From contig OZ316899.1 of NCBI GenBank assembly GCA_973895155.1, positions 15,837,974 to 15,901,973 of the forward strand: 64,000 nt of DNA. The letters run 5' to 3'. The notes below the pieces were generated by a model. That model searched no databases. It saw nothing but the letters and a program-made list of their open reading frames with translations, and had not been told where the DNA came from. A program made the position numbers and the translations under genes. This document shows, in pieces, positions 15,261-61,623 of the stretch. Numbering within the stretch: the stretch's first letter is position 1; every line of letters starts with the position of its first letter. The DNA is from Marsupella aquatica (taxonomy: Eukaryota > Plantae > Marchantiophyta).

Positions 15261-15706
15261 ATCCACCAACCCAAATTGCTACAAATGAGGTGCTTTGGAA
15301 TAATGAAGTGCTGATAACACTTCACACAATGTGGTTCCAACCCTCACATATATATGCCATTGGTATTTTCACACAACGCTTAGTGGTACAAGGCACAAAT
15401 AGTTTGACTCGGCCTTATAACTTACAGTCAAGTTGTGGAGGAAGAGCTGCTATATACCACTCCAATGATGTGATACCTTGCCCTCATCAAATTGCAACAG
15501 TTGACAATGTCATTAACATTTTAGTAATGCATTTCACATTCATGATAATGACTTGGAACCAAGTAGTGCATCTTTTGTATACTCCCCAAAACCAATTTGA
15601 AGAACTCAAGGCTTTTCCCAAATTGCCCTTGCAAAAAATAATAATCACTACATCATTGCACTGGTCTATTGATGTTATTCATATTATTATTTGGTTCATA
15701 ATTCAA

Positions 15707-15770
15707 AAGGGTTTAGGGTTTAGGGTTTAGGGTAGTCATGAGGTACCACTTATTTGTTTAGGGTTTAGGG
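15707..15770 (+). repeat. Short interstitial (TTTAGGG)n tracts
   Basis: agggtttagggtttagggtttaggg and tttagggtttaggg. Confidence 0.8.
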
Positions 15771-16414
15771 TATGGAGGGGTTGGGCAAAGAATTTGTAAG
15801 AACATTATGGTGTGTTCATATGACATTTTCAGCAATGTCATCTTCCATGCTACAACCTTTTTGACACATTCATTTGACATTATTCTATGCAATGCACACG
15901 GGTATCGGTTTACATACTCAACATACTGAATTGGTTTGCAATAAAAAATCCAACGGCTGAGATCCCGTAAGGTAGTAGAGAACCATTGGATGCCAAACGG
16001 CTATGTTCCCGCCAGACCAAGTTTAGCAAATCCTTCACAAGTAGCCTCGTGACATTGGATCCATTTTCCCCCAAAAAAATGTCGAGGCCCACCTGTCAAT
16101 GTAGTTGTTTTGGTCTACACATAGGATTTTGGCGGGTTTATCGTAGGAAACGGTCGCACGCAGAGGTGTTGAAGGTTGAGGGTTGAAGGTCGTTGGACGC
16201 AAAAGCTTGGTGGGACATTGGAGGCTTGATGGTTGTGGGTCCAAGCTAGCCCACTGTTATCCGATCGAACTGTTGAAGCTGTTGGTTTAGGGCATTTTGT
16301 GTGAGGCATTTCACTTGGAAGCTCATGAACAAAGTCACCGTTTGAGCTCAGCGTAGGAATTCTGTTGAGTCAGAGCTCAGTGGGAGGGTTTAGGTTCAAA
16401 CCAAGGTGCATTTA

Positions 16415-17070
16415 CATTTGTGGATAGTAGTTTGCATTGGAGTTGCAAAGGAGCTCGTCGGAGTTGTGAAGGAGTAGGGAGTAGGAGTTGTGGGCTGCCA
16501 TCGGCGCTCCTGCTTTCTTTTACTCCCATAGCGAGCTCCCGTATGAGCTCTTATGTGAGCTTTGTTCAGCTGCGGTGGGTGCTGAGCTGTTTTCCATCGA
16601 GCCGAGCTGTGTTGTGCTGAATTTTGTCTACCAAAGCTCGGGGGAGGGTTTCCGGTTGGACATTGGCGCCGCATGGTGGGCACTGGACTCTCCAAACTCC
16701 TTGTCAGCGGTATTGCGGAGCTAGGCAAGCTGCAAGAAGGGAGCCAGGCAAGCTGCAATAGTGGACGTTGACCTATAGTGCAGGTTGGAGTTTCTAATTA
16801 GTCAACATTGCTGGGATTTGAGCTCTCATTTGCTTTGGGCTATTTGTCAGAGTCGTAAATGGTTGAGCTGATTTCCGCCAAGCTGATTTCCGTTGAGCTG
16901 ATTTGTGGATAGTGGACCTATTGGTTCACATTGGAGTTGCAAAGGAGCTGGCCAGAGCAGCTCGGGCTGTCACAGCTTGTTGGCAGCATAGGTCACAGCT
17001 TGGGGGAGGGTTGCCGGTTGGACCTTGGCACTGCGTGGTGGACATTGGACCTGCCAAACTCCTTGTTGGT
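16415..17070. repeat. Imperfect direct repeat (16415-16705 and 16900-17070)
   Basis: Shared tttgtggatagt..cattggagttgcaaaggagct..ggggagggtt.ccggttggac..ccaaactccttgt. Confidence 0.7.
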
Positions 17071-17250
17071 GGTTGTCGACTTTCATCTGGCTCAGCATAC
17101 TCGCCACTCATTTGTTTGGAGGTTAGTGAAGCTTTTCAGCTTCTTTCACTTCCCGGCCATGCCCTTGATTTCTTTCAGCTTTCCCAAACAGAGCTTACTT
17201 GCTCTCTGCTCTCTGCTACAAGTCCGGGTCTGAAATCAGCTGTTTGTCTT

Positions 17251-17276
17251 GATCAACCAATTCATTAAAAGTGGAA
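17251..17276 (+). repeat. Left TIR of the GATC-ended element
   Basis: gatcaaccaattcattaaaagtggaa. Confidence 0.8.
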
Positions 17277-17794
17277 AATTATCAATGCTTTGGAATATTG
17301 CTTATCTCTATTTAGAATATTATAAAACCAAAATTGGAATTTAAATACCCAATTTTTGGAATTTCTTGACACACATTTTTGAATTTTTTTCATGATTTGT
17401 AATATTTGTTTATGAATATATCAAAGTCAAAATACCTAGAAGTATTTACAATCCATGAACCTTGTATCATCCAAGACATTCTAAAGTGAAGTCAATTTTT
17501 GGGGGGGAAGGGGGGGGGGGGGGGCACAAAGCCTCAATACCACACAAAGAGAAGTCATTGACAAACGTAATATATATTTCATATTATTTTAAATAAATAA
17601 AATCCAAAATTGAAATGACATAAGTACCCTAATTACCTTGCCTAATCAATTTTAGACTCAGTGCCAAGCAGGCAAAACATAAGAGTAGATTACCAACCTA
17701 AAAAATAAGTCATCCTTATACTTTTGATAGTATAGACTTAACAACTAACTGAATCTATATAATCCTACTAAACAAATGATATCACTCTCAATAT

Positions 17795-20700
17795 CTACCT
17801 TTGCTCTTCTATATCTATCCTTGCTAAATAAACTTTGATTTCCTCCAGTTTCTTTTTGGGGATTCGAATGCCTTGTTCAACTTTATTCCCTTGATATGTC
17901 CAAAAGTGCATGGCTGCTGTTGCATTACACCATTCTTCTTTCTGCAAAATATCACATTCCCAAAGTTTTTGCTTCTTCAAACATCCTTCATATCGACCAT
18001 ACAATGATCTATCCTTTTTGGTGCTTTTGGGTCTCCACCATTGCAACAGAAAATCTCCACAATTTGGTAGTTTAGGGTCCATTTGAACTTTGCTCAATGC
18101 TCTTCCCATCCAGAAGCATCCTGGCTTGTTATCCTCAAATTCTTGTGTTGGACGAATAATGATGAAAACGCCTGCTTCAAAATCTTCAAGAGGAACAAAC
18201 CGATTGCTTTCCCTTTCAGAAAGAGGACCCACAAATATTGTTTGACCTTCAAGAATTTCCTCATCAGCCTCACGTTGAAGGATAACAATATCTGGAGGAT
18301 TCTCCCAACCCGTCACATCAAATGATCCAAGATCACTTTTATAGCCTGTACCATGTTTGGTTCGAGGCCAAAACCCATCCACCAGCGGCTGCTCTTCAAT
18401 ATCCACTATCTCCAAAAGGGGCTTTTGCAAAAGCTCAGTAACTGTCTTCCAATATTGCACTAAAGGAAACCTTTCCTTATGTCCCTGTGAGGTCTTATCC
18501 TTCCATGTTTTCTCTATCCACTCTATATAGTTTTTGATGTAGGCTGAAACATCTTTGGCTTTCTGAAAAAGTGTAGTTGGGGTTTTGGCAAGTGGTTCTC
18601 CAATTGGAAGGACAAGTGTTTTACTTCCATCTTCAACCCATATGCATCGTCCTTGGGGTGGTGACCATGAGTCATTGATATTCTCCTTGACTTGGTACAC
18701 AGGGACATTATTTTTCATTGTAAATAGGAATGCCATTGGTGCAGAGTGCCCTGCAATAGTCTTCACAAAAGCACTAACATAAGACTTGTAGCTAGCCACT
18801 TCTTGGATCAATGTGGGCAGTGGGTGAATTGCTTCGCTTTCCCATACCTCTGCCATAAGTGAAAGTAGGGTTGTGACCTCACGATGCTTAAGTCAAGTGC
18901 TTACCCTAGAGAATACTGCATCAACACCCTCATGTGTATGCCCAACCATAAGGAAAGACATGACAATACTCTCAAAGTGTCCCCTCAGAACCAACTCACT
19001 ACAGAATGCCATCATGGCCCAATTCTTGTTGTCCTTTGCAGAGTTGTCCATTTGTAAGTGTAGATGTCTTGGCAATTTCTTGAACAGTGTAGTGCTACTA
19101 CTCTGACATTCTGCCAATCCGCTTGCTACAATTGGTGAGACACAATCCTTGTCCACAAGTTCCCCACGATATCGATCAGTTGTGACATTGTTGGCATCTA
19201 GATATCCAATTTGAAAAGCTTGCTTTTCCAATAATGCCTTGAATAAGGGGTTTGTTGCTTGATGAGAATGAACTCCAAGATCTCCACTTTTATCCCCCGA
19301 ATATGCTTCCAAATCACGCAGGCACTTTGCAACGGAGGTAATAGTAAAATCCGGATCAGATGGCCACATCCCTGTCAAACTAAAGTGGGCAAAGACTCCA
19401 GGTTCCCGACCATGTGTCAACATCCCAGTCAAAGCCATTGGTAGTGGTTGACATCCACTAGCCATGCTTTTTAGTGTATCAACCATTTTAGGAATTTGGG
19501 TCTTGTTTTGATCCATCTTATCATGAATAATGCAAAGAAGATCTTCTGGATTTCTTCTTGCCATCACCCGAGCTGCATAGTAAAGGTTTCAACGAGACAT
19601 TTGTTCTTGCATGTGTTTTTCCCTTGCTGCTTCGTACCGCTTGCGAACTTCAGTTCTTCTCTCCTTCATCAACAACTCCTTCAAAGTGGTGCATTGAGTG
19701 CACTTTGCAAAAGCACTCTTCACATGGAATGAAAAAATTGCATAGTTCTCCCTCCACATCTTATAGAAAGACCCAATGGTAATTCCCTGACTCCCTTCCA
19801 CCTTCATGCTCTCAACTACCTCATCATAGATAGCATCTTTGTTATAGCAAGATGGTAATCTGTAGATGATGTTTGATGTTCCCTTCTTCCCTGTGTATCT
19901 GAGATGTGGCATAGGCTCGCCAAGGGTATTCACTACACAGTCAAGATGAGCACGAAACTCTTGTGTTGTCATCCTTGGTTTTTTGGTGCCCTTATTGCCA
20001 TGAAACCCCACTTTACAACCACCCTTGTATAGATTCTCATAGTTGTAGAAGGTGCTTGTAGAAATTCCAAATATAATTGCAAATGCCATTTTGCAAATGA
20101 TGCGACCTTTGACAACCATTTGTCCTTGCTCAACCATAGATCTCTCCCTCATTTCAAAAACATTCATCATATGACTGATTTTGTTATCACTGTCCAAACC
20201 ATAGAACTCAGTTCTGACCTCTTCAATGTCTATGCGGGGGAAGTTCCGACAACATTCCATTCCACACTTGCACTTCTTCATGCCCACTTGAGCTATTTTG
20301 TTCTCATCCACCTTCACACTTCTTCTCTGCTCCACTCTTTTTTCTTGGCGTGCATTTGGGTTGGCTGGTTTTCTCAACCCGCCCATGGAATAATGCCTTT
20401 TCTATTTGCTGGTACTCCATAGAAGAGAACAAATCATCCTCATCATTATCCCCCTCTTTATGTATAGTCTGTTCATCCTCAAGTTATGACAGAAGATCTC
20501 CAAGAAACTTGTCAGAAGGATAGAATTTCAAAGTTGCAATCGGCCATTTTACCAAGCACGGGATTCCCACTAAAAATGTGGGAAATTCCTTCTGTTGCAT
20601 GTGGATATTGCAAATCACACGTTCAACTAGCACCCCAACATGACCATCACCAAGCACTTCATTGTTTATTGCTGCTGTTGGTTGCCATGCTGTGATTGAT

Positions 20701-21518
20701 CCTCTTGCAAGCAATGTCACCCGATCAACAGTATAAATCTCCACATCTTTTAAGTACCACTTGGAACGATCATTCAAATCGTAGTTGTCATGTGGTCCTT
20801 GGCTGAGTCCGCCATTTTGAATCTCAATCGATTCACACCCATTGAATTGCTCACCAACATGATATACATTGACTATATCCCAAAGAACAACACTACCTAC
20901 AGACTGCTCAATTGTCTTTATGTTAGTGTTGGGGTATGGCAATTGAGTCACCCCATGAAGTGCTTCAACCACATGGACACTAATACGCCCTGGTCCCAAT
21001 AATATGTCACCACAAGTATCCTCTGGTTGAGTATTAGAAACTTCACCCCGTGCAACAACAATGCTTGTAAGTTGCAATAGCACATCATCTCCTGAACAAA
21101 ATGGTGCAACCGGTTCATTGTTGGAATTGGGGACTTGGTTTCCAACAATCCTTGAATCATCAGTTCCTTCAAGTCTCACAAGGTTGGGAGTATCATTGGA
21201 TGCTTTTTGGACCTGCAATGGGATGTTCTCATTTGCCAAAATGGCACTAGCACAGTCCCATATAACATATGAACGCAAAGCCTCCCCAGTGGTGTCAGCT
21301 CCTGGATTTGGGTAAGGAAGAGGTTTTGTTGGCTCAAAGATTTCAACCACCAGAACACTCATGCGGTTGTTACCCAATGCCTCAGAATGACAAGTGTCTT
21401 CTGGATTGGTCTTAAACACAACCCCCCTTGCAACCAATATATTCTCAAGATGAAGAAGTACTTCAGACCCTTGGGAGAACAAAAAATTGGCACTCCGAGT
21501 TGTAGTCATGATCTGCAT
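17795..21518 (-). pseudogene. Sola-like (DUF7869-type) DDD transposase with three N-terminal En/Spm Tnp1/DUF8039-like repeats
   Basis: ORFs 17795..18856, 18893..19567 and 19589..20386 are one frame broken by two TGA codons. Motifs: KCTQC, IIHDKMD, LQMDNSAKDNKN, FLMVGHTHEGVDAVFS. The upstream ORF has three copies of VARG..P.DTC...LG...V.V......LPYP......VxW and is linked via a TAA and a frameshift near 20400-20486. Confidence 0.75.
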
Positions 21519-21582: not shown

Positions 21583-24500
21583 AACCTCAATATCATCGTG
21601 AGGTTTCAGGCTACTTGGATACTAAAGTGAAATTCATCCAGGCACTAAACCTAGTTTTTGTGGTTAAACTTAATATGGTCCCATGCAAGTGCTTAACATG
21701 CATAGTTGGGTCAACTTTGCATTAAAAATTCCATTATGTAGGTATAAGGCAATAATGTTAGAAATAATAGTGGTCTAGAAGGTCCGCAAGTAATTACACG
21801 GATGTGGACTGACAGAATATACTACAATATGTTTGCGGCAATACATTCACAAGACCTACTAAGAGATTCAATTTAACCCAAAAGAATGAGAATTATTGGT
21901 CATAAAATAAAGTACAGTAGAACTTCATGATTGTCATGAGGTTTCATTTCTTGCTTCAAGAAGACTGAATTATGAATAAATGAATGAGAACAAAAATGAA
22001 GTACCTATGGACTTAAAGGCTTGTATTGGGAAAAATCTCATGAGGTTGAGAGAAATCAAGTCTTACAACCCATTAAAAAATGATCCATTCACTATTTTCT
22101 CTTAATGTTGATATTAATAGTTTAGTCCATGTAACTTCCATATGAATGATGGACACACACAGGAAAACTTACAACCTCAAGATGATCTTGAGGATGACAA
22201 TTTATGCCTCTATATCTCAATGAACAAAACAAAACATATGTAGACCTATGTCATATTGAGCTTGGCCAAGTATGCAAATTGATGGTCATAATTAGTTACT
22301 TTTAGTGCACAAGACAAAAATAAAGCTAAAGACTCACAAACGACTTAAACAAAGTAAAAGAAACATACCCAAAATTCAGAATCATAAATGTCTTTGCCGC
22401 ATGTGGTGAAGATAGAGTATAAGAGTGCCACCATGCGTCCTCATCAATTAGAAGATGCCCAAATGTTCATCAAACGTCAGTTCAGACTCAACTGCAGTGT
22501 CAGCATTGTCCACCATGATCTAAGAGAGTTGGAGTAGGAGGAGGGTCTTTTCATTGGTTAAATGAAGGAAAATGCTTAGACTTCCCTCAGAAAATAGTTG
22601 TAGAAGAGTGGGCACAAATAGAGAATGCAAAAGTGTGAGTAGCAGAAAAGAAAAATAAACAACTCTGAAACTGAAGTAAACTGAACATGTGGAAGTGTTG
22701 GCTGGGTTTGCAAATATATCTTTGAGAGCAACGGATCAACGTGAGATGGATTGACTAATGTTGCTGATTTTGAGTTTATTGGCGAAGACTCATTGGCCCC
22801 AGGTTTGGAGGGAATTGTCAGCTTTCATCAATAAGAATGAAGAAAAAACAAAGTTACTTAGCACATTTTTAATATTTAAAGAATGATGACAGACCTTTTG
22901 CTTTTGCATGCTGGATTTGTCCTCCTATATACTGTAGAGCTCTGTATTTACATGGAATCAAACGGGAGTTTCAAAAATCCTTACTATTCATTCTGTTTTT
23001 TTAATTTTCCACTCATTGGCCCAGTTTTGGAGGGATTCGTCGACTAGCTCGCATTAATAGACTCCAAGTAAACGACATTTGCTCAACACATATTAATTTT
23101 TAAAAATATGATGACTGAGGGACATTTTGCGATTTTTCCTCCATTATTGTACAGACTAGTGTATTTGCACGATGAGGAACCTTGTAGTCAGAATTTTTAT
23201 GTTTTTGAAATTTGAAAATTTTCAGGTTTTCCTTGTGGCTAAGTATTTTGGCTTGTTGTCTTGCAATAACAAGCCACCATCCATTTCTTAGTACTTTTTC
23301 TCCTTTTAGCAACGCTTGTTGGCCCATTGACCTCACCAACTTCACCAACTTCTTGGACATTACTTGATTTTAGTGGAGTAGTTGGAGTTGGCCTTTTTTT
23401 GCCATGGTCAAGTGTAAATCTCTCAATATTTTTTTAGAGGCCCCAAAATATGGATTTAAATTTTTGGCCAAAGACGAATGTAAATTTGACACAATTACAT
23501 TAGAGTTGTTAGGATTTGGTACCAAATATATAGTTGGTACCAAATAATTAGCCATATATAGATGCATGCCATATAAGGTGTCATGTGACTTACTAAGTGT
23601 CAGCTCCGTGTGAAGAGGAGAAGGCGGCTAGAGTTGGCGGAAGCTCGATTGGGAAGTTATTGGGGGTACTTCACCAAAGAAAACTCTGTCGTTTGTTGAG
23701 GCCCTAAAAACTTGTTTGTTGAGGCCCTAGCTGCCAAGAAGAGGATGATTCGTAGTGTGAGGACATCCGTAGCAAGAGCGCATGCAGGGCGTTTTTAGTG
23801 GAAGGTGAAAGGTTGTGAGGACAGCCGTAGCAAGAGCACATGCAGGGTATTTTTAGTGGAAGGTGAAAGGCTAGCAGGCGCTACTGCTGGCACGCCCTAG
23901 TACTGCTGGCACGCCCTTGTGAGGGATCAGCCGCAAGACTTCTCCTTGTTCATGCTCACATATCTATTTAAACTCAAAATTCTCTGCACTCATTCCTCAG
24001 AATTGTGTACATCGTATGTGAGGGAGGACTATTCAAGTTAGCTACAGTACCTCTGTCATAACTGTCTGCACAATCACCAAGGTACCGACAGTCAGTGTTT
24101 ATGTGGAATAGTGGAGTAGATTCCTGTTGTACTAGAGGTGCCTATGAATCATTAGTGTTTTCGGTATTGCTGGTAGCTATATGTGCCTTGCTCAGGCCAG
24201 ACAATCCCTCTACTGTACGTATGACTGGTGAAGGAGGTGCGTATCTCATTGTCCTTATCTTATCTTGGGTTGTTATCTTATTATCTTCTTTCTTAATTGA
24301 ACGTGAACTAATGGGTGTCATGAGTCTCCTTACCGGCTCAATGCGCTTTCTCATTTGTATTTGATAAGTTTCGTGACCGGTTCAATACGCATGCGCTTAT
24401 TATTATCAGAGTATGCTTTGAGGAGATTGAGTTGCATTGTATTGTTTAGGGTTTGAGTTGCTAAATTAGAAACTTTGATTGAGTTTTGGTATACCAGAAC

Positions 24501-27500
24501 GAGCAAGTTTAGAGTATCTGCAAAGAATCTTTTAAGATTCTTTGATAGGCGCACGGCTTTGGCATGGCTAAACCCAAGAAGGATCTGGTAATGATGACAA
24601 AGCAAGCACATGTTGGGCTTCCAGGTACTTTTCATTTTCCAACCTTGCTACTTCTGTTATTTTGGCATGTATTTTTTGACATTCTCATGTTTTTTGCTTG
24701 TTAACCTCACGATCGTCGTGAGGTTTGACTACTCTAATGCTTTATTAAAGTTAGAATTTCAAATTTTTTTACTTGATAACCTCATGATCATCGTGAGGTT
24801 TCTACATTTTCTTGCTTGACTAACTAAGATGAGGAAAGTGATTTCTACTTGCCTAACCTCATGATCATCGTGAGGTGAAGGGTCATCATTTCATGGCTTC
24901 ATGAGAGGGTGAAGGACATTTTTTCTTTTCAACCTCACAATGGTGATGATCAAGGTTTCAAATTTTCATGCATGGATAGAGAATAGTAACATCTTTTTTC
25001 TGTGGATCACCTTCAAATATTTGTGAGGATTAGGGTCTTTTTTATGGTTTGGCAATAGGTTCAAGGATATTTTTGCTTGGAAAAGCTCACTATCATTGTG
25101 AAGTTTAGCCATATTTTCATGGTTTGGTGAGAGGTCAAGGAGAGTATCAAGAATATTTTTGTTGGCAGCAAACCTCACAATTGTTGTTTCATTTCATATT
25201 TATTTGCATGGTTTGGTTCAAGGGTTGAGCTCATGTTTTGTCATTTTTATGCTTCCATAGAAATTGTCAAGTTCTATTTTGCTTGCCAAAACCTCACGAT
25301 TACCGTGAGGTTTGCTCATTTCTGCATCATTCCACCTAGTTTATTCTCAAGAATTGGATCTGTTCATTTAATTAATGGACTTCACTTGTTTGTTGTGCAG
25401 ATGATTACCATGAGTTGGACCCAGTATCTGCACCAAAAATTTGTGATAATGATGTATGTTTAACATACAGCTATGACATTGGAGAAGAGTGGGAAATTGA
25501 TATGTACCCTTACGATGGAGAAGTTCAGTTGTGTTTTATTGACATAAAAAAAGATCCACACCGATTGCGACAACACATTGTTGGTCCAATTGCATACTTG
25601 CAAATGCATTCTGAGGATCAAGTAACTGTTCTTGTAGAGAATTACACGGAAAAAAAATGGTATCAGTACTTGCTTGATGCAAATACATATGGAGTGCGGT
25701 TGAATACAACTTGGATTGATGATATGCCAGCCAATGTTATTTCTTTGGCATTCTTTCCTTTGGACTTTAGTTTCAAAGGTAGTTCAGATCAAGGACAACT
25801 TTCACACCAGGAGATTGCATCTGGTTATGCTCGAGTCTTACATTTGCTGAAAAGAAAGAAACATTTCTTGTGTAGGACATTGCAGATGGAGCAGTGCATT
25901 TAGACAAGTGGACTAACCAACATTGATATTGATCCAGCTGTTCTTTTCCATAAGAAATTTGGAAAAGAAACACTCTCCAAATGGATTGACTTGCAAACTT
26001 TGGTTGCAAACAAGGTGAAGGAAGTGCCAAAGTCTTTAGAAGATGACTTGGGAGTAGATATGTCAGAATATGAAGGGGCCAAGGCAGACGAAGAAGCGGT
26101 ACCAATCATTGATCCCAATAGAGAGGCATCTTCACAACAAAGTGAGAAGCTTGATAGTGTAGAGCCTCAAATTCAGAGCATTCTTGGAATTGTCCAACAA
26201 AAGAAGAAACAAGCTACCAAGCTTGTAGTTTCTTAGCCAAAGAGACGACCGCCAACCACCAAGGCACAAAATGTGCAGAGGAAGAGAAAACAGCCACAAG
26301 AAGAGGACAACGTGGAAGAGATTTTTGCACAACAAAGTGAAAGGATTGAGCCCATTGTACTTCAAATAGGAGGCAATGTACAGAGCAAGCCAACAATTGT
26401 GCAACCAAAGAGAAAACCATCAACAAGAAAGAAGTCATTGGGGAAGCAACCAGATAGCAATAGGGATACAGTTGTTGATCTTGTGCAACAAGGAGCACAA
26501 ATCTTACGAGAAGTGGGTGACAATGAAGAGAGTGAGTTACCTGGAGCCAAAGAGATTGAAAAATCTAACAAGATTTTGCAAGAGGTGAAAGATTACTATC
26601 CTTTTGGAATTAGAACACATTTTGGGATTCCGGTGAAGAATATCATGCAACCTCCTGCTACCATGTGTTATAGGAAAATTAACCTTGATCATGTTGATGA
26701 GATAATGACTAGGATGATCTTGCATCCCAAGCAGCAACCTCATCCTGCTGATTTAGTTCCCTACAACCCTCAGACCTTGAAGCCAATGAGTTTTGCAAAA
26801 GATGACATGACTCAATTTCAGAAATTGATGCCAAGGTTAAAGTTCTTTGCTATAAGTGGACAGCACTCTGCACTTGCCGCTCAAAGAATCTGTGAGCATG
26901 CCAAAAAACAACCTGATCTTCGAGAGCTTGCAAATAAATTGCAAGTACGTTCATCTTGCATTTTTAGTGGAGCTACACCAAAAAAGATCTTGCTGGAGTT
27001 CTCTAGTAGCTCAAATGAGATGAACAAGATTTCTGATTATAAATCTCCATTCATTGATAATGTGGAGCATGCAAGAAATCAGTACGCTGATTTTGGTTTT
27101 CCAAAACGGCCTGAGGCGGGACAAACAGCAAGTCCAATTTACAAGGTAAGTTTGCCTTGCATAAAAGGTTTAAGTTTGTTGTACTGTGTTATTTTTCTGA
27201 ATCATGAATGCAATGCCTAAGTAACAACCTCACAATGATCGTGAGGTCAACTACTCATATTGAAAAGATATAGTTTCTTTTGACATGTGCAGGAATTTGA
27301 GCATACAGCAAAAATGACCATGGAGAAGAAACATCTTACTGAAGTACTTGGATACTTTTTGCATCTGAGAAGTTGTATTGTTTGTGGAAGGAAGTGTGTA
27401 ACAAGTGGCTTGAGGGAGAGCTTCCAGATGGACAAGGTATCATCACTGAAAATAAAAAAGAGTCTAAGCTTCTAACAGTTTCAAATTTCCGGAGTTTGGA

Positions 27501-29541
27501 GGGAGGCTTGCAAGATATGATATCATAGCCATTCTCAAAGAGGTCGAACATGGTGGAGTTCTCCTTAAGAAAGATGCTTCTTACAAAGGTGACATGCAAT
27601 CTATGGAAGAGCTTGCCAAAACAACAAAAGTTCTCTCCAAACTGAAGGAGATAATTATTGGGTATTATCAAATCACTTTTTCAGACCATTTTCCTGATAA
27701 ATGTACTTGGAAGGAACTATGTGATAAAATTCCCATTGATGCTAGGGAATTGGATAGATGCAGAGGAGTGGCTGGTACCAAGTACTTGATATCTTGTACT
27801 TCTCGGAATATTGCACGTGAGAAAAATATTCCGCATGGTTTAGTATCAAGACTAAATCAACTATTTTATGATGCGTTCGGTGGAAGCCAGAGAAAGAGAT
27901 TAGAGCCATTTCTAACTTTTTTCACTGACAACTTAATGACAACATGTGAGCCTGGTGCTTTGGAAGAGGCAGCTCCTTTTGTTCCTCTTGCCATTGTGGA
28001 TTTTGGAAAACGAAACCAAAAAGAGTGGTCAGTATCCCAGTTGGAGGTGTTTTTTAAGTACATTGTGGAAACAGCAAAAAATGATGCAATAATGATTGTC
28101 ATTTTTTTATTCCATGGTCATCTTTACTCCAACGTGCTAACTGCACTTTACAATTTGCCCGATATTCACTTACATTTTGAATTTGGATCATTTGAGAGAG
28201 CCGATGGCTACATACATCCTGGGAGGTTTTTCAAAAATGAGCGGGAACAAATAATTATTGCAGGTATGTAAATTTGAAATTTGTGTTTGGGTTTGGGTTT
28301 ATGATACATTGAGAAAACCTCACAATGATCGTGAGGTTTAGAATTATCACTAATTGTAGAATCTAAATTTATTTGAACTTAGTAAGTTTACTGATCATTT
28401 AGTGTTTTTTGGCAACCGTTTCACACAGTGCAAAACAAGATTGGGTTGACATGTTTCCTGAAGGAGATATGAACTACCAATTTGATGAGGAAAATGATCG
28501 AGATTACCTTTCCAAAACTTGGAAGACTAATCCAAAATATATTCCAGTGGATGAGTCTAAAGAAGATCGAGAGGAACGCTTGAGGGAAGAAGCATTCAAG
28601 ACGCTAAAAAATAGAGCTCCTCGTTATTCATTTTTGGATCAACTTGGAGGTTTAGTTAATCCTGATTGCAAGCCTGCTCGTGTGCTCAACAACATCATTC
28701 ATAAATTTTCTGCACGTGGCGCTACAATTTTTGATTTCTTTTCTGGAGGATCAGTTTAAAAAAGTGCATTCGAGCTTGGAAGAGAATGCTTTGTGTATTC
28801 AGACTCAAAAAAAGAGTCTGAATTCTTGAAATTATATCCAAATATTTTGAGAACAATTCCTGGAGTTAACAAATTTTGGGAGAAGGTTGGAAAGATCAAT
28901 CGTGGTTATCCTCCTGAAGATTCAGAAGTTATTGTTGAGTATGCAATTATTGACGATAATGACGAAGATGAAGATCTTTCTAGATTTGAGGAAGGGTCGC
29001 CTGTTGTTGGTATTCCACGGGATAATCAACATCAAGCTTCTGTTTTGATTGAAAAAATCTTACAATCTTCAAGTTTGAACAAATCTTCATCAACAATGAG
29101 AAGCCAAAATGATTTGATTAACCTTGCAAGTCCTTCACAGGTAAACATCTATTCTTCATTTTATTTGTAGTTTACTTATGAGGTATTTATATATATGTGA
29201 ATATAATCTTATGTTGGAATTGTTGGGTCAAAATAGACCAATGCTTGCAGGAATGAAGAAATTACAAGTATTGTTGAAACTGAGACTATGAAGGTAGTCG
29301 AAATAGAGATGGAGGATATCAAATTAGGCCAGGCAGGTTCTTCTCAAAATGAGAATACTGGAAATTAAATACTTTATGTACCAAGTAGCAACTTATATTA
29401 GATGCTAATTTGAATTCAAGCATGGATCATGCTTGCCATTTGAGAAACATGCTCATCTCCTTGAAAAGACAAGTATATATATGTACTTTTTATTGACTTC
29501 AGATTTTTCACTGATGCAAACCTCATGATTATCGTGAGGTT
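21583..29541. repeat. Dispersed 23-bp palindrome AACCTCACGAT-N-ATCGTGAGGTT, ~10 copies
   Basis: Copies start at 21583, 21921, 22173, 24703, 24778, 24855, 25290, 27226, 28316 and 29519; degenerate or half sites at 24931 and 25171. All are non-coding or intronic. Confidence 0.92.
22789..23917. promoter_or_regulatory. Probable divergent promoter region with short direct duplications
   Basis: Lies between the two divergent genes. Contains ctcattggccc(c)ag.tttggaggga x2, tttgttgaggcccta x2, a ~56-bp unit x2 (23757-23870) and tactgctggcacgccct x2. Confidence 0.45.
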
Positions 29542-30326
29542 TATGAGTGATATTTGTACCCCAAATATGTACACAAAAAGCTTGTATTTAAAAAATGCTA
29601 ATACGATTGTTCCTTTGAATGATTGTATCAGCCAACTATTATAAGCATTTCTCACAATGAAATGTCACCACTTGACAATTTACAAGAAGAAGTAGGACAA
29701 AATGATTCATATTCAGAAACAAGAGTACCTGGAATTGCATCTATTGAGTCACCCCTTTGGAGTGATTCTTCATCTGAAGAAGGATTGCCTGCTGGAATAT
29801 TTCCATTAGCACCAAAAGGTAAAGATTTTGTTATCTTTTATCTGTGTTCATATTTATATAGGATTTTGAAATTAGTTGTTGTACATTTATTTTACAAAGT
29901 TCTAATTTATTTGTAATTGCATTTGTAACAGGTCAACACGATCTTGATCCATGTCACGTTTGGTCTTACCTGCCAGAAAATATAGCCCGAGATCGTAAAT
30001 TACTAATTTTTGATCTTAGTGGTTTATTTTTCCGATCGCAATATCTCGGAAAAACAATATGCACCAAGTCAATATCAACGGCAACTGTGCACACATGGCG
30101 TGGTAACATGTGGACAATAAGACCACAAATTCATGAATTTTTGCAAAAGTGTTTCTCAAAGTTTGACATAGGAATATGGAGTTGTGGAACTGATCAAGAA
30201 GTCCAGATTCAAGTCAAGACTATCTTTGGACCCGAAGAAATTAAAAAAGTTCTTTTTATCAAAAATCAACATCATGTTCAAGAAGGGCTCAAGAATAGCA
30301 AAGGTGGACCTGTGTTTTTGAAGAAC
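25401..30326 (+). pseudogene. Multi-exon gene: ParB/Srx-like domain + N6A/N4C (beta-class) DNA methyltransferase-like domain + start of an FCP1/SCP-like HAD phosphatase
   Basis: ORFs at 25415, 25991 and 26273 share one frame with two TAGs. ParB-like YRKINLDHVDEI..P..FFAISGQHSALAA. MTase-like NPDCKPARVLNNIIHKFSARGATIFDFFSGGSV*KSAFELGRECFVYSD. FCP1-like LLIFDLSG..IRPQIHEFLQKCFSKFDIGIWS. GT-AG introns start at 27146, 28264, 29141 and ~29819. Confidence 0.75.
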
Positions 30327-31170
30327 CACTAGAAGAATCCGAGGTGAACTGAGACCGCAATATGTGACTCATTTTGGCTCATGTGACTTCATTGTGACTC
30401 AACGTGACTTGACCCACGCTGTGACCCTTGGAGTTGCAAAAGTTGAGACCAAAAAATGGTAGTCACTATTGATACTGGGCTTTGCAACTTGCTTGATACC
30501 CATTTGTGACTGATCTGTGACTTTATTGTGGAGTCTAGCCTTGTTTCGACGTGACTGCAATATGACTTCAGCGAGTCACATCGTAAGTCACATGCATGAC
30601 TTACCCGCATTCAACAACGACTAGTGTGTGACCATTTAGTGTCACAGGAGAGACCAATGGAGACCCTGGCCCGCGTCACACAACAGAACCATTTGGGACT
30701 CTATATACTCATGTTTATAACTAATAAGGTTCACATGCAAGTTATAACCATGACTAATGAACACAGAGGGACAGTTCATAAGGAGAGAGAGCACTCGACA
30801 TTACAATACATAGAAACCTGATGTTCTAACTTTAGAAATATAACACATTCAATACAAGAAATGAACATAGCATGAATGACATCCACATGAAACAAAGCAG
30901 ATCCTACATAAAACATTCATAAGAATTAAACACAATCACAATCTTGCTAAAAAATGAAGATCATTTGAATTCCAATGGAATAGTTTACAATGTGATCAAT
31001 GTAATTCAGACAAAACAGGAACTCATAATTGATGACTGCAGGATGAGATAACTGAAAGCACATGCATGATACTATGAATCTCCAAGAGGACATGATTCTT
31101 GTACTGCTTCTTGACATCTAAAATCTACATAACATGACTCACACTACAAACAAATAATGACATGACATTG

Positions 31171-34100
31171 TTATGGATCCTCTATGAACCTGCTTGGCCA
31201 TAATACCAAAGAACCTGCAGCATCTCCAAGTGTCTTTTGAGGAGGATCATCATTTGTGTTTGGAATGGGAAGGACAGCTTTAGGTTTCACTAGTAATGTG
31301 ACTAACACTACTGAATAACCTGGGGGAATCCTCTTGCCATGGAACGTTGTGGAACCAACCTGCACTCTGCCAAATCCTACTCGTGTTCCACTCTCATCAA
31401 GAGCTAACAAGCCACTTTGTCCCTCAGCATTAGGTGCTTTCCCCACTTCCACCTTAGATCTTTCTGCCAGCACCGTTCTTGGAGGTTTGTATGAAACCTT
31501 TGACGTGGCTCTGCTCCCACCAGCAGACTTGCTTCGTGTGCGCATGCTTCCTCTCTTCACAGTAGTGAAGCTAGGCTCAGTAGTTTCCTCTGTTAGGACT
31601 GTCACAGTAGCAGGTTCATCACCTGGGAGTGTCATACCAACTAACTCTTTGGTTGGATTTATCTCAACAAGAGGCACACCTGTCATTGAGAATGATACAT
31701 TCTGCAAATCATTTATCTCTGCAATGGAGTCAAGATCTACATAGCATGAATCTGGCTCAATGGTATCATTGTCATGCTTGCTGATATCCTCATTTGCCCC
31801 AACATTGATATCATCCACTCCCTTGCCAATGTCATCCTCATCCAAACATGGTTGACTGCCCTCTGTCAAACAAGTTGCTTGTACAGACTGCAACTTTGTT
31901 GCCTCTAAATTACAGCGAGTATTTGCCAGGTTCTCATACTTCTTCTCTGTAGCACCTGTCTTATTCTCTATGGACACATCAACCACAATATATGTTACTG
32001 AAAATAACACATTCAACAAACAATGTCAATTCAAACTATACATTTAATAATCATATCCCACACAGTTGTAAAGGCCTTACCTTCAAGCCTACATGTCGTT
32101 GGCATGCCAGAAGAGTGCATCAACTTTGCCACCTCAAGTGGTGATGGTGGAACTCCTGCAGAATTGGAATCAATTTTATCTCTCACCGACACAACAGCTT
32201 CCATTAATGTCTTGAAGTTCACATGGAACAAGTCAGTCAATGAATTCAAACGTTCATTGATCTCTGGAAGACATGTTTCGACAGCCTTCAAACGACCACT
32301 TATCTCTGTAAGTGAAGATCCACCTCCCTACATGACACAGGGGTATAGGTTCAATCACTCCATATGAAATGTTGGGCAATATATGCACAATCAATGTTAT
32401 ATACAGTGTACACCTGAAATTCAACGCAGGTCATTCAATTACCAATCAGAACTCATATAACTTACATGCTTGGAGGATTCAGATGCACCCTCTTGAGCCC
32501 GGGTGTTCACAATTTCAGCCCTCAACTCTTCTTTTGAAGGGCTTTGCCCCAATTGGGCTTTCTGCACATGCATGGCAAACACAAGTTATCGATCAGTATT
32601 CAGGGAACGTACACTAAAAAACAAAGTTTACATGTATGGGTTTACACTAAAAAACAGTACATAGTGTAGCATAAATTACATAGCTAGGCCATTCATTCTT
32701 ACCAAACGTTTAGCTGTCGGTGCAATGCCGGTCCTTCCTGTCAGATTAGGGTTCTGAACACTCAACCTGGCCTCGGTCATCTGTGAACTCTTCTTTTTTG
32801 AAGCATCTGTTACAAAATAAGCTACTAACCTTGCCCACACTTTATCATCACAACTGGCTGGTGGAGGCATATCTGGCTTCTCCCCACCTTCCTTCCAAGC
32901 CTTATGCATTCTCCACCTCTCTTGCTTGATGATTTTACCTGCTGTACTCTCTAGGCAACCTATGTCCACGCCATCATCACTGCCCACATAATTCCATTTG
33001 GCAGCAACATTTTCACATACAGTCTTCCAATCTTTTGGATGCTGTTTTTTAAAATTAATAACACTCACATCTAACCAACGCAATACTTCAGCTTTCAAAT
33101 CAGCATGCCATCGGTTCTTGCGAGGACACTCAGCATCCACCCATTGTCTCTCATTCAACTTTACGTTCCCTTTCTTTGTCACCTCCCCTCGTGCACTGCT
33201 CTCGGTAGTACTGGGCGTTGTATTGGCCACCCCTTCATTCACCCTACCTGGGGTTCTGAAGCCACCTGGGAAAATACAATGCCATTCATGCTTGAGAACT
33301 ACATATAGCAGAATGGATGACGACAACATTCAATGCTTCACTTCAAGAAAAATTCTTCAAACATACATACCTGTAGCTCTGCCTGTAGATGCCTGTGCAG
33401 GGACTGCACTCTGAAATTGTTGCGACCCTGGACCACCTGTCCAGCCTAGTACAGGGGCCGGATGATGTCACTTTCTAGGTATGTGTGTGCAAACATATGT
33501 ACTGAAAACTAAGTACAAACTGTAGGAAAAAAACTGAACATTCACCAACATACCTGTCCCCCTTCCGTGCTGCATCTGCATAGGGGCATTAGTGAATACT
33601 TGAGTCGATGGTTCGACTGTCCAACCTGCACACATACATTTTCTATCATTATACATGTGCAGAGTCCCCCCCACGTGAATGGACTCCAGATATAATGAGT
33701 TCTTCCATTGCTGACAAGATCAGACATTACCTGCCCCTCTTCCAGCGTTTGTAGGTACTGAATTTTGATATCCCTGCCAATTACCTTCACCACCTTCCCA
33801 ACCTTGTTCATTCCACGACCCACCACCATCCTCCCAACCTGGTTCAACCCATGTCTGTCCTTGTGGACATTGGAACTGATCATTACTAGCATTTGCCCAA
33901 TCAGGTTGGGCAGAATCTGCATGCAATGGCAGGTGGACAGAATTTCATGTTGTCTGAATCCAATACATCCCAAACAATGTCAAAAATTGATATGCAGTCT
34001 GAAATTCAGGAGTGCCATGCCTTCACAAAGAACTGGCATATAGATATATACTCACATCCCCATGGTTGAGGTGGACGTCCATACCCACGAGATTGTGGGT

Positions 34101-34880
34101 TTGGACCTGCTCTGCCTCTACCACGGGCATAACCTAGAGCTTGCCCCCTGCCATAGTATTGGGCACCAGCCTGGGATCTACCACTACTACCACCTCGCCA
34201 ACCTTGATCAGAGGTCAGCCCCCCCTGCTGGTATGGTGCATGCACAGGCTTCGAAGGCAAAACAGAACTGGCAGGACGCTGCATCACATCACCAACTACA
34301 ATGTCAGGAACTAAGCAAGGTACATATGTGTAGTACTGAACATATGAAACCTCTAAACAAGAGTTTTTAACTCAAAACCTTGTTGGGAAAACTACTTACC
34401 TGTTTCTTTTGGGGCTGCTCTGCAATGTATTCATCTTCATAACCCCCATCCTCATCCATTTCCTCTGGAAAATACTCATCATCTGCATCTTCTTGTCTAG
34501 TGTCTGCACCCACCTGTGCAGCATCAATGTCATCTCCACATTCTGCCATTGTAGGTACGACCTTCTTGCTCAACCTGTCACTCCGACGCACAGGCCCAGA
34601 GATAGTGTTGGTCACCCTTCTTGCGTACTCCTTTTGTTTCTTTGAAAATGCTGTGGCTCTGCGACATTCCAATATGAGAATACAGTCACAATTTCAGTGC
34701 CACATTGAACTATTCATGTCACACAAACTCAGCGGAGGGGTGTAGTTGAGAATCGTTCCCTTACAATTCAGCCACATCCTTTTCCAGATCCAGTTCTGCG
34801 ATTTTGGCTTTCACGTATGCTCGTTGTTCCATAGCTTTCCTTTCATACTCACACATCTCTGTGTCACTCTGTTCCATCCT
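31171..34880 (-). CDS. Multi-exon TnpA-like CACTA protein with a C-terminal Tnp1/DUF8039-like domain (exon limits approximate)
   Basis: Series of minus-strand exons with GT-AG borders. Last exon ends RVGFGRV..TFHGKRIPPGYSVVLV..AVLPIP..TLGDAAGSLVLWP. Confidence 0.65.
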
Positions 34881-35033
34881 ACTGGACCACAAAAACATGT
34901 CATCTATGATCACCCCGTATAACACAATGCAACCACAATCACCAAGCATCCATCCATACATCTGTGTTGCTTCAGAATTACTTTATTACACATCCTTCCC
35001 CTCACTAATGTCCATGCAAACAATTCACATTAC

Positions 35034-38000
35034 TCATGGCACAGGCACACTGTTGGCATCTGCATCTCTAAATTCGCCTCCTTCAGCAAATGCATCTACC
35101 CTTGTCACAGGAATGAAGTCCCCGCTATCATGAACTACAGGCACTTGGTCTGAACGCCGACGATCAAAGGCACTATGAGAGTGTAAATGAAACTCAAGGT
35201 TTGATCCTTCCATCCGACGTTGCCTGGCCTGTTTATGACACACTACACGCCAACCTGGGGAGTCTTCCACATCCAGGAAGAAAGCTTGCTCCACCTGACT
35301 AGGAAACACAAATGGCTCAGACCATTCGGGCAATTTCCCTCTGAAATTGGCTAGCAAGAAACCGTCGTTGTCTCTCTTCATGGTAGCCCTGTTACCAAGC
35401 CAATCCTGCCGCACCCATGAACCTTTCATAAGAATCATAGGACTGGACACCGCCCCATAGTCCAGAGCCCATATGTCAACTAATTCTCCCACATATCCCA
35501 TCTCCATCCAGGCCCTGTCGTGATTGTGGCTCTGTTGCTCAAATACAGTGATGAGCCCGCAGTCATTCGTCACCCTGTAGGCACTGTCACCATCCTTCAC
35601 TCGAAAGTGATTCCCATATGCTCTCATCCGTTTGTAAGTCTTCACTTTTAGGCTAGGGGCATTAGACAGTAGGTAAACATCTGCATCCATGTTTGGGTGG
35701 GTCTCGTGATGCTCTCTAATTGCCACTCTGATCCACTCCATGAAACCTGGAAAAGTTGTTCCTGCAGTGGGATGGGCCGCCTTCAATGACTCATACTCCC
35801 TGAACGAACAACCACACAGCATTAGCTTGGGTAAACATGGACAGGCTGAAGGAGAAAACCACACGAACACAACATTTAAGCTCATGAACTGGATTATAGC
35901 ACATGTATGCACTCACTGTATCCAGGGTTCCATCACCACAGTGTTGTGCAATACAAAGTCATGTGCCAAGTCTCTCATAGATATGGTCAGGTTCTTTGTG
36001 GTTGCAGCCCCTTCCAGTACTTCACCTATCACCCCTTCCTCCTCATCAGAATTCCACACCCTGGTCTTCACATGCTCATATTGTGCTATGTATTCGGTCA
36101 GAAATCCTAGAGTCTCATCCTTGATGTAACCTTTAGCCATGCTTGCTTCAGGTTTGTAATATGTTCTCACGTGATCTTTGAGTAGCTTCATGTACCATTC
36201 CAAAGGGTACAACCAACGAGCACTCACAGGCCCAAATTGGTGTAGCTCTTCCACAACATGGACAAGTAGGTGGGTCATGACATCAAAAAATGCGGGAGGA
36301 AAATAAATCTCTAGGTCACACAGCACCTGAGCGACATCTTCTGTCAGTTGTGGGAAGTGTGTTTCATCCCAAACCTTCACACAAATACGACGAAACACAT
36401 CACTGAGTCGCATGATCACAGTACGAACAGGCTTCTGCAACAGGCCCCTCAGGCATAAAGGCAACACCTGTTGCATCAACATATGGTAGTCATGGCTTTT
36501 CATACTACCAAGCTTTCTAGTCATGATATGCTTCTTGAAAGCACTGCCATAGTTTGAAGGAACCTTCAAAGAACTCAACCTCTGCACAAATAGTTCCCAC
36601 TCTGTGTCTGTCAGAACATAGGGCGCTTGGTACTTCAAGAGCACATCAGCTCTGTGGGCATGTGGCCTCAACCAAAGATGGGGTTTCATTCCCCTCTGTT
36701 CAAGATCCAATCTCACTGAACCAATGTCTTTCTCTCCACACAAGAATCTGAGTAGACTCTCACAAATATTCTTTTCAATGTGCATAACATCAATGTTATG
36801 TTTGCTTGGCTCAAACTCCTGCATCGTTGCAATGCAAAAGCGTCAGGAAATGCCTCAAGTTTAGTCTCTCTCTTCGAAATGAATGCACATGCTCTGAACC
36901 AAAACATGTATCCCAATTAGCATCAACTCCAAGAGGCTTACCCTCCAGTACTTGAGCTCCAAGTCCAATATGCTCAGTCTTTTTACACCATATCGCTTTA
37001 TTGGATCACTCACTCCATCTTCCCTGCCCCCTCGTTTGATATAGTCATCCCTCAGTGCTCCCCACTGCCTGATCTCCTCTTTGGTCACTCGTGCCGGGGG
37101 TCCACGTTGCTCAATCTCATTGCCAAAGTGTGCAATCAGTGCCTGTCTTTCTCTGTAAGGGTGATCTGCCTTCAGAAAACGACGATGGCCCATGTATATC
37201 ACTTTCTGCAGGGCTCTGGAGTACTCACTCGTGACATTGCGCCCACAGATAGTACAAGCACAATATCCTTTTGTTGTTTGGCCTGATATCATCCCATGGG
37301 CTGGGTAGTCAGCTATAGTCAGAATGACAATGGCTCTAAGGATGAATGGGTTTAACCTCCCAAGCCTCTGTAGGACATCATATGTGAGAACTCCTTCCTC
37401 CCAAAGCTTTCTCAATTCCTCCACTAGGGGAGCCAGAAACACATCTATGTTGGCAGATACAGCACTGTCTGGCCCTGGTATCAGTAGGACCATCAGAACA
37501 AAAAATCGCTTTGTAGTCATCCAAGGAGGAAGGTTATAATTCAAAATAGTTACAGGCCAGCACGAAAATTTGTTGTTCTTGTCTCCAAATGGGTTTACCC
37601 CATCCAATGACAGCCCAAGTCTGACATTCCTCAGCTCAGCAGCAAATTCGGGATACATCTCATCTATGAGTTTCCATTGCCTTGAATCTGCAGCATGTCG
37701 TTGTAGCCCATCATCACTTTTCTTGTCAGTTGCCCAAGTCATCATCTCCGAGATGGCACGGCTTCTGAACATCCGCTGAAGTCTGGGAATGAGTGGAAAA
37801 TGACGAAGTACCTTGGCGGGAACCATAGACTTTCCTGAGTTCCGATACCTATGCTTCCCACACTTAGGGCATGTCAACGATTCTTTATACTCCTTTCTGA
37901 AAAGAACATGCCCATCAGGACAGGCATGGATTGAATCATAGTTCAATCCAAGATTAGATATGCATCTTTTTGCCTCGTACATGTTCTTGGGCAAAATATT

Positions 38001-38765
38001 ACCATCTGGTAGCACAGTTGTTCGCAAGAATGCCAACAACTCAGAAACCAAAACGTTGGGGACATTGTGGTTGCCGCAAATGTTCAGGAACATGATGACA
38101 AATCCCAGTTTAGAACATTTGCTACCGGGGTACAAAGACTTCCTGCCTTCCTGTATTTGCAGGGGAGAGCCAAACATCCCATCATGCCCAGGGGTTTCCT
38201 GCCCTATCTCAAACTCATCAAGAGGCTCTTCGACAGGGGGCACACTTGCATCTGCAGCCGTATCCTCTTCGTTGTCCAGCCCATCATGAAATGCATCCAA
38301 GTCTTGGAAGATGTCTCTCACCATCTCTTCCACATGAATTCCTTCGTCACGTGGTGCTGCCTGAGCACCATCCCGTTGGAGAGCTGACAACCCACAGAGA
38401 CCAGCTACAACATTTTCAAATGCACCAGGCAGAACCTCACTTGCCCGTCTTGCAGCATTGGCAACATCAAATTCTAACCTCCACTCCTCGTCGGAAGAAT
38501 CTTCCTCTGCAGGATCATTCCAAACTCGATGTCGTGGATCTCTTCCATGAACCGCAATATGCCGCCAAACCTCATTCAGACCCCTGGTACGGGATCCTTG
38601 GCAGATTGCACAAGGACATCTCATCCTACTGGCTCCTGAAAGTCTGGTTTGTAACCTTTCACGCTGCCAAAGCTTATTATCATGGCGTGATATCCTTGTG
38701 GGATGATGCAAAGGCAGTGCCTGTGCCCTGGGCTGGGTTTGGGGAGGGTGGTGACCAGGGTGCAT
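35034..38765 (-). CDS. CACTA TnpD/TNP2 transposase (Transposase_21, DUF4218, DUF4216), spliced
   Basis: RCPCAIC, SIHACPDGHVLFR, LRHFPLIPRLQRMF, RNVRLGLSLDGVNPF, TIADYPA, IDVMHIEKN, MKSHDYH, YFPPAFFDVMTHL, EPFVFPSQVEQAFF. Confidence 0.93.
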
Positions 38766-39297
38766 TGTAACAGGCTGGAAGCTCTGCAGTCATGGACAGC
38801 AGTGAACAGGGATGCCTAATGGTGGTATTTGTGTTCCATATATCCCTGACTGTATGTGCCAAAAGAGTTAACATAACGTGTAATAAATTCTCACAAACCC
38901 TAAACCACCCCAAAAGAAAAAAACAGGTTTGCGAGTAGTGTACCTATTGTCAAGTGAATGACACAAAATTCCTCAATGTTTGAGGGTGTCACCACCTCCA
39001 CAGCTGTCCTCAAATGTACCGCCTCTGCATGTACACCCATGACCATATCAGAGTCCAATCATGTATAGTCATAGGCATAGGTGTGAGAGCGGTATCAGAT
39101 ATCTCACCGCCGAGATTTGAGCCCACCCAGTACGTTTACAATGACACCCCCAGGCAGCAGGAAACAACAATCCGCCAACAGTAAAATAAGCCCAACTGCC
39201 ACCAACCATAACAAGGTACATTAGTTCAAAGATCACATTTATTTCAATGATCTGATTTATACAAAAAAACTTGTGTCCAAACTGATGCTACTACTCC

Positions 39298-61619: not shown

Positions 61620-61623
61620 AAAA

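Follow-up and report, generated by a model that had tools for sequence, protein, structure and literature searches.

A 64,000-nt stretch of the genome of the liverwort Marsupella aquatica (assembly GCA_973895155.1, contig OZ316899.1, positions 15,837,974 to 15,901,973 of the forward strand; hereafter the window, numbered from its first letter) holds a 31.2-kb DNA transposon at 17252-48433. Within this host element lie a gene whose product is predicted to join a ParB/sulfiredoxin (Srx)-like domain to a methylase-like domain of bacterial type, and next to it a gene with a NIF (FCP/SCP phosphatase-like) domain. The setting is eukaryotic and the window contains many transposons. The host element is bounded by 26-nt terminal inverted repeats (TIRs; 17251-17276 and 48409-48434, inverted repeat I3) with 92% complementarity; if its ends are taken as ATCAACC...GGTTGAT, it spans 17252-48433 and the 4-bp target-site duplication (TSD) CTTG is found on both flanks. 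The two accessory genes are transcribed divergently from a DUF7869-type transposase. The transposase frame (17795-20386, minus strand, 864 codons) matches DUF7869 in Pfam with an E value of 7.7e-31 and contains two in-frame stops; an open reading frame (ORF) of 344 amino acids lies upstream of it (20484-21518, minus strand), and the transposase has 40% amino-acid identity to the same gene at a Riccia locus (L003). On TSD length and layout, the transposase is probably of the Sola1 type: Sola elements reportedly make 4-bp TSDs, and among the Sola1 features the TIRs and the 4-bp TSD are present here, while DUF7869 is the only Pfam match of the transposase. In the literature searched, no mention of DUF7869 was found.

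The best protein match of the stretch comes from another liverwort, Calypogeia fissa (protein P0001, 59% identity), and other relatives were found in Riccia sorocarpa, in the fern Adiantum nelumboides and in environmental contigs. The order of transposase (minus strand), ParB-methylase-like gene and NIF gene (both plus strand) recurs in the Calypogeia locus L001 and in Riccia L003, and two metagenome contigs, L002 and L005, carry the ParB-methylase-like gene followed by the NIF gene, without the transposase part. Collinearity between the window and L001 extends from 25433 to 29164 and resumes in the NIF gene. A host gene broken up by transposons was considered and rejected, since the TIRs and TSD enclose the module, the transposase adjoins it and other species carry the entire module as well.

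A single three-exon gene at 25604-29170 is well supported, encoding in order an N-terminal domain, the ParB/Srx fold, a helical region and a beta-class methylase fold (Table 1). Exon 1 is collinear with P0001 and L001 and ends in the donor AAG/GTAAGT, the splice sites of exons 1-3 are common to Calypogeia, and the ParB and methylase parts stand in one gene model or ORF in P0073, P0077, P0049, P0114, P0097, P0108 and P0083. The N-terminal domain itself (25604-25996; L001 10001-10399) comprises about 130 amino acids with 59% identity to Calypogeia and a ratio of nonsynonymous to synonymous substitution (dN/dS) of 0.2, and same-frame conservation extends upstream of it to 25433; it has no Pfam, PDB or usable Atlas match.

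The copy in the window is dead. Three in-frame stops interrupt the gene (25901-25903 and 26234-26236 in exon 1, 28757-28759 in exon 3), exon 2 has lost one nucleotide after 27347 and another after 27516, and the AG of the intron 2 acceptor is mutated, position 28415 being A. The NIF gene carries a 6-nt deletion at 30284 and is split by a nested CACTA/EnSpm element, and the transposase has the two stops noted above. Contigs from four public sequencing runs (two studies) are about 99.4% identical to the window and differ from it at exactly the point defects, with an extra A and G at the two exon 2 deletions and a G at 28415. These runs are not RNA, and their contigs retain the introns, with no splice joints. 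Because the run contigs are free of the point defects, an intact or far less damaged version must be present in the sequenced material, and the family has been active in recent times. The value of the dead copy lies mainly in its exact anatomy and in its list of defects.

Table 1. Features of the host element and its accessory genes, in window coordinates.
Feature	Positions	Strand	Remarks
Left end	17248-17277		TSD CTTG 17248-17251, then TIR starting ATCAACCAATTC
Transposase region	17795-21518	minus	Pfam and translation
Divergent intergenic region	21583-25312		six palindromes, starting at 21583, 22173, 24703, 24778, 24855 and 25290
Exon 1	25604-27145	plus	N-terminal domain, low-complexity linker, predicted ParB/Srx-fold domain about 26615-27034
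Intron 1	27146-27292	plus	GT..AG borders conserved with L001
Palindrome in intron 1	27226-27248
Exon 2	27293-28263	plus	helical region, then N half of the methylase fold; tblastx frames
Intron 2	28264-28415	plus	splice site from Calypogeia gene model P0005
Palindrome in intron 2	28316-28338
Exon 3	28416-29170	plus	C half of the methylase fold and acidic tail; terminal stop 29168-29170
Ninth palindrome	29519-29541		between methylase tail and phosphatase exons (intron 3 or intergenic)
Upstream exon of phosphatase-like gene	29632-29818	plus	conserved ATG 29659; donor AAG/GTAAAG 29818/29819
NIF/FCP-SCP domain, part 1	29932-30326	plus	D-L-S-G-L 30012-30026 at the DxDxT position
Nested CACTA/EnSpm element	30327-47297	minus	16,971 bp; splits the phosphatase gene
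NIF domain, part 2	47301-47954	plus	motif IV LIDD and C-terminal extension; conserved with L002 and L005
Right end	48408-48437		TIR ending GAATTGGTTGAT, then TSD CTTG 48434-48437

The ParB-like domain carries the motif SGQHS at 26855-26869 (plus strand), within FFAISGQHSALAA. An exhaustive profile search gathered 131 cluster representatives of this family, 54 of which formed the alignment for an AlphaFold (AF2) model of window positions 26540-27217. Neither the window piece nor the 54 relatives match ParBc in Pfam. The model has a pLDDT of 88 and a pTM of 0.81; the 35 best Foldseek matches belong without exception to ParB, Noc, KorB, PadC, Srx or SbnI, and in VIA-align the model superposes with the cytidine triphosphate (CTP)-binding N-terminal domain of M. 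xanthus ParB (residues 37-132) with a Z score of 10.7 and a root-mean-square deviation (rmsd) of 2.1 Å over 94 residues. It was by structure prediction only that the ParB/Srx fold came to light, and we regard the predicted fold as real. The N-terminal fold is followed by two helices (residues 148-184) and then by disorder, and an alignment with KorB reaches residue 203 only at an rmsd of 4.7. The Box II column of the 54 sequences reads S-G-Q-H-S-A, in which H109 is invariant and G107 and Q108 are kept in at least 90%. The GERRxRA arginine patch of Box II, which is needed for CTP binding, is absent from this column, and clamping by CTP in the manner of canonical ParB is for that reason doubtful.

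The methylase-fold domain contains NPDCKP (motif X) at 28658-28675 and DFFSGG (motif I) at 28733-28750, both on the plus strand, whereas the position of motif IV, after the strand LAIV, is occupied by D-F-G-K (27999-28010). Pfam N6_N4_Mtase (PF01555) scores the window piece below its cut-off (E = 6e-4, 20.2 bits versus 26.7) and the L002 piece above it (E = 4e-8, 33.9 bits), and the N half of the domain is unrecognised by the Pfam model in every member scanned. As the window copy is broken, the fold was modelled on the Calypogeia gene model P0005 (448 amino acids), which is 61-69% identical to the window pieces. Foldseek with this model returns M.RsrI first (E = 1e-6), then CcrM, M.PvuII, M.BceJIV, M1.HpyAVI, M.MboIIA and the rotifer N4CMT. 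In VIA the top 20 are all beta-class amino-methyltransferases, with CcrM at Z 15.5 over 203 residues, and M.RsrI, M.PvuII, M.MboIIA and N4CMT at Z 12-14, well ahead of METTL3 and MTA1 (Z 9-10). In addition, the family profile aligns motifs X and I to M.RsrI (E = 6.9e-6), and the permuted motif order IV, target-recognition domain, X, I is present; the G-loop reads FSGG, one residue short. Word-indexed protein searches, whether by the methylase half or by P0005, returned almost nothing outside Calypogeia. Across nine aligned members the motif IV position is D-[F/L]-[G/A/T/I]-x, two others being gapped there, and none has (D/N/S)PP(Y/F/W). The beta-class N6A/N4C methylase fold thus keeps its cofactor side (motifs X and I) and is without the catalytic loop family-wide. 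Because the whole family has D-F-G-K/R in place of DPPY, DNA methylation by this domain appears unlikely.

The phosphatase-like gene is recognised by Pfam NIF (PF03031) on both sides of the nested element, with 22.3 bits at 30087-30332 (E = 1e-4, cut-off 21.8) and 21.2 bits at 47295-47954 (E = 2.5e-4, profile positions 107-160). The L002 gene scores 42.7 bits (E = 6e-11), and L005 is annotated with PF03031. The nested CACTA element has perfect 11-nt termini (CACTAGAAGAA/TTCTTCTAGTG) and a 3-bp TSD, AAC, at 30324-30326 and 47298-47300; when the element and one TSD copy are removed, the frame continues as it does in the relatives from Calypogeia and the metagenomes, L002 and L005 reading straight through. 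Upstream, the exon at 29632-29818 has weak collinear similarity to L001 20813-21016, and the 3' splice-site region just before it is conserved. The nearest solved relative of the NIF domain is UBLCP1 (E = 1e-8), ahead of SCP1 (E = 4e-3). Like UBLCP1 and SCP1/CTDSP1, the family keeps, by inspection against L002 and UBLCP1, the nucleophile Asp, the Ser/Thr of motif II (IWSCG), the Lys of motif III (FLKN) and the DD of motif IV (LIDD). Unlike them, it has D-x-N/E/S-G for DxDxT: the column reads D-L-S-G-L in the window, D-V-N-G-F in Calypogeia, D-C-N-G-V/M in L002 and L005 and D-V-E-G-L in Riccia, so that the second (acid/base) Asp is Ser, Asn or Glu and the Thr is a hydrophobic residue. Also unlike them, it is transposon-borne, has no ubiquitin-like or BRCT domain (no ORF scanned gave a BRCT match) and carries a C-terminal extension of about 110 amino acids with a conserved CNRD motif. 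By its sequence, the product is an atypical HAD-type protein of the FCP/SCP family, and its phosphatase chemistry, if any, would be atypical too. The CNRD...D..K motif of the extension occurs in three lineages (window 47700-47954, L002 5743-5928, L005 4774-4956). In the literature searched, no paper on transposon-borne FCP/SCP-like (CTD-phosphatase-like) genes was found.

Much of this had been anticipated by a sequence-only reading of the same DNA, which proposed a transposon-borne protein with ParB/Srx, prokaryote-type methylase and FCP1-like phosphatase domains. The genes do lie within the TIRs and the CTTG duplication beside a transposase, and the domains do follow one another in that order, as judged by the two predicted folds (Z 10.7 and Z 15.5) and the NIF profile. 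The motifs it had quoted (SGQHS, NPDCKP, DFFSGG, DFGK and DLSGL) are on the plus strand where it had placed them, and its continuation of the HAD domain at 47298 is borne out by the exact join of 30326 to 47298 across the CACTA element and its TSD. The profile and structure searches that it had suggested gave a divided result, with ParBc unmatched, PF01555 borderline, NIF matched, and AlphaFold in favour of both the ParB and the methylase folds. Its caution that both enzymes could be dead applies to the whole family, in which DFGK stands for DPPY and DxDxT has lost its second Asp. Its link to RNA polymerase II through an FCP1-like domain is not supported, the nearest solved relative being UBLCP1, a proteasome phosphatase, and not FCP1, with no BRCT domain seen. 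The introns through which it had spliced are real, but the stops through which it had read are also marks of a decaying pseudogene.

Selection was assessed between the window and the Calypogeia locus. The dN/dS values, which are rough with dS near saturation, lie between 0.11 and 0.20 in all four domains (N-terminal, ParB, methylase and NIF) and reach 0.44 in the acidic tail, a pattern that indicates purifying selection on each domain. A check of motif IV and dN/dS, proposed beforehand for intact copies, gives in the relatives an absent motif IV in a family whose domains are conserved. The catalytic loop has been lost and yet purifying selection is strong, which points to a role as reader or scaffold and away from self-methylation.

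A candidate for what is read is present in the element. The 23-bp palindrome AACCTCACGAT-N-ATCGTGAGGTT has nine matches in the window with at most three mismatches, against 0.00 expected, and all nine lie within 21583-29541, in non-coding DNA of the element (Table 1). The close relative in Calypogeia (L001) shares this palindrome and likewise has it in intron 1. In other lineages the palindrome is a different one: L002 has GTTTCACGCGC...GCGCGTGAAAC both upstream of the gene and directly behind the ParB exon (the same intron position), L005 has GTTTCACACGGC..., and Riccia L003 has arrays of GGGGACGCGTCCCC. The palindromes and their differences between lineages suggest self-recognition of the element, mainly because protein and site change together from one lineage to the next.

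On balance, we find it moderately probable that the genes described here are the accessory module of a dead copy of a liverwort transposon, in which the ParB/methylase-like protein is a reader, not a writer, of the element's own palindromes, and the NIF gene adjoins it or is spliced on. The protein would bind the 23-bp palindromes in the promoter region and the introns, and this binding could serve self-recognition by licensing the element's own transcription, by letting it escape silencing or by assembling transposition complexes. The phosphatase-like protein would act as a co-factor.

Several results weigh against this account. Searches of the PDB with phmmer and with profiles of 5 and 54 sequences found no ParB, and a helix-turn-helix after the ParB-like N-terminal domain did not emerge from the AF2 model of 26540-27217. 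The methylase model has a mean pLDDT of 57 (70-83 in the core strands and helices) and represents an orthologue, not the window copy. Both motif I and the acidic residue following strand 2 persist, which leaves room for binding of S-adenosyl-L-methionine (SAM), or even for some unusual catalysis. Lastly, none of the public runs on record as RNA contains the stretch.

The sequence-only reading had all three domains in one protein; ParB and methylase are indeed joined in many gene models and ORFs, but for the joining of these to the phosphatase the evidence is split. We assessed it with the window exons searched apart by reference, P0005 standing in for the methylase domain. One spliced protein of ParB, methylase-like and FCP/SCP-like domains, which would bring the phosphatase module to the bound DNA, has a chance that we put just short of even. 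A strong phase-0 donor, CAG/GTAAAC, lies at 29140/29141, 27 nt before the stop, and the acceptor at 29631/29632 shares this phase and opens a frame into 29632-29818 and then from 29932 onward; the region immediately upstream of this acceptor is non-coding, yet conserved with L001, and the putative intron would hold one palindrome, as introns 1 and 2 do. In the window, in L005 and in Riccia L004 the NIF exon lacks its own ATG, and the intron-poor contig L005 has the methylase ORF and the next ORF in one frame across a single stop. Two gene models cross the boundary, Riccia P0113 joining the methylase-tail motif RFELG to the NIF exon and Adiantum P0099 holding ParB-like and NIF parts; however, P0099 extends over 18.8 kb and could be a merger of separate models, and P0113 stands on a deletion derivative. 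Two separate genes are favoured by the stop with which the methylase tail ends in the window, L001, L002 and L005, by the gene models P0083, P0073, P0114 and P0005, which end before NIF, and by the conserved ATG in the upstream NIF exon (window 29659, L001 20866). The whole case for a fusion is one of prediction.

A second alternative concerns which part of the protein does the reading. The ParB/Srx domain might be a nucleotide-dependent enzyme or switch akin to DndB, DUF262 or sulfiredoxin proteins (DGQHR-like) rather than a parS clamp, in which case the palindromes would be read by the target-recognition region of the methylase-like domain or by the transposase. With its near-invariant Gly, Gln and His, the S-G-Q-H-S of Box II resembles DGQHR/GCHR, as found in DndB-like proteins and sulfiredoxin, more than it does GERRxRA; the only repeated weak Pfam match, in two members, is DndB PF14072 (E = 0.04); and Srx and SbnI are among the fold matches. 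Beta-class methylases, moreover, typically read short palindromes. Nevertheless, the best structural matches are the CTP-binding N-terminal domains of ParB and Noc, and the final Arg of DGQHR is Ser here, and we hold this alternative to be rather unlikely.

We think it very unlikely that the methylase-like domain is an active writer of N4-methylcytosine (4mC) or N6-methyladenine (6mA) and so marks the element, the role put forward for the algal proteins. The beta-class fold is complete, motifs X (NPxxKP) and I (DFFSGG) are conserved, an acidic residue follows strand 2, the domain is under purifying selection and the rotifer N4CMT is among its fold matches (Z 12.9), but none of the nine aligned members has the PP(Y/F/W) that positions the target amino group, the Pfam model misses the N half in every member, and METTL14 and MTA9, motif-IV-less paralogues that are both in the fold list, are non-catalytic partners. 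With no family member having (D/N/S)PP(Y/F/W), the earlier proposal that the protein marks DNA finds no support either.

The module is a land-plant variant of a published type of transposon accessory gene. Its closest counterpart is Sola1-1_Ec32 of Ectocarpus, which carries a 1104-amino-acid ParB and DNA-methylase accessory gene on the strand opposite the transposase, with self-binding and self-modification proposed (PMC12477816). Both are large DNA transposons with an accessory gene opposite the transposase, a ParB-like domain followed by a prokaryote-type N6A/N4C methylase domain, and self-binding as the proposed role, the Ectocarpus protein being compared by its published description. They differ in that the host here is a land plant (a liverwort, with fern relatives), motif IV is absent from the whole clade, and a NIF-type gene always follows, whereas PMC12477816 reports neither palindromes nor a phosphatase for Sola1-1_Ec32. 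The Plavaka element of Bostrychia has in PAG3 a ParB-like domain with a 2-oxoglutarate oxygenase and adjacent inverted-repeat arrays (bioRxiv 10.1101/2025.02.11.637652). As in the window, a ParB-like N-terminal domain is fused to a domain of DNA-modification type, inverted repeats lie beside the gene and self-binding is proposed; the transposon superfamily and the fused domain are different, and the Bostrychia methylase is on a separate protein, PAG2, with a SET domain.

The bacterial and phage ParB-methyltransferase fusions, and ParB, Noc and KorB themselves, share with the liverwort protein the N-terminal fold and the methylase topology of motifs IV, X and I. Unlike those systems, it has no GERRxRA patch, no Pfam ParBc match, no DPPY and no ParA partner, and its gene has eukaryotic introns. 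A functional analogy is offered by VANC, reportedly an anti-silencing protein of the Arabidopsis VANDAL (Mutator-like) transposons. In both cases an accessory protein of a DNA transposon is accompanied by short motifs that cluster in the non-coding sequence of that protein's own family and diverge together with it between families; the protein fold here is unrelated to VANC, and a shared function would be by analogy.

Transposon-borne ParB-methylase-like genes, published for brown, red and green algae, are thus extended to liverworts and ferns. The constant companion phosphatase-like gene and the lineage-specific palindromes make up a testable pair of protein and site for self-recognition of a transposon. 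A broader scheme, which we offer as tentative and think improbable as a whole, is that in Sola-type transposons of land plants the ParB/Srx protein with a motif-IV-less methylase domain reads family-private palindromes in the promoter and in every intron and brings an FCP/SCP-like module whose active site is altered, either fused to it or as a partner, to the transcription or chromatin machinery on the element. If true, this three-part self-recognition would be an anti-silencing or transcription-licensing device with a fold unrelated to that of VANC.

Some further features of the host element and its surroundings may be recorded. Inside the TIRs, the subterminal regions 17289-17387 and 48307-48383 share a 77-nt segment rich in TTTGGAAT(A/T)TT, with 74% identity and in direct, not inverted, orientation. 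The nested CACTA element looks complete, with Transposase_21 (E = 1.5e-69), DUF4218, DUF4216 and Transposase_24 ORFs on the minus strand and 57-nt tandem repeats at 45685-46026. In L001, a copia-type long terminal repeat (LTR) retrotransposon (14700-19000) separates the methylase tail from the phosphatase exons, having inserted in the region where the window has its ninth palindrome, and in Riccia L004 a Replitron_HUH (PF21859) gene (12354-13442) adjoins a deletion derivative of the same transposon family. Outside the host element, a tandem array at 13285-15296 consists of units of about 540-710 nt with 80-98% identity. At the other side, 300-nt blocks (50743-51042 and 61624-61923) are repeated exactly 10,881 nt apart, with minus-strand ORFs of 997-1088 amino acids between them, and the region 50743-64000 probably represents an LTR retrotransposon whose LTR-like units are very long.

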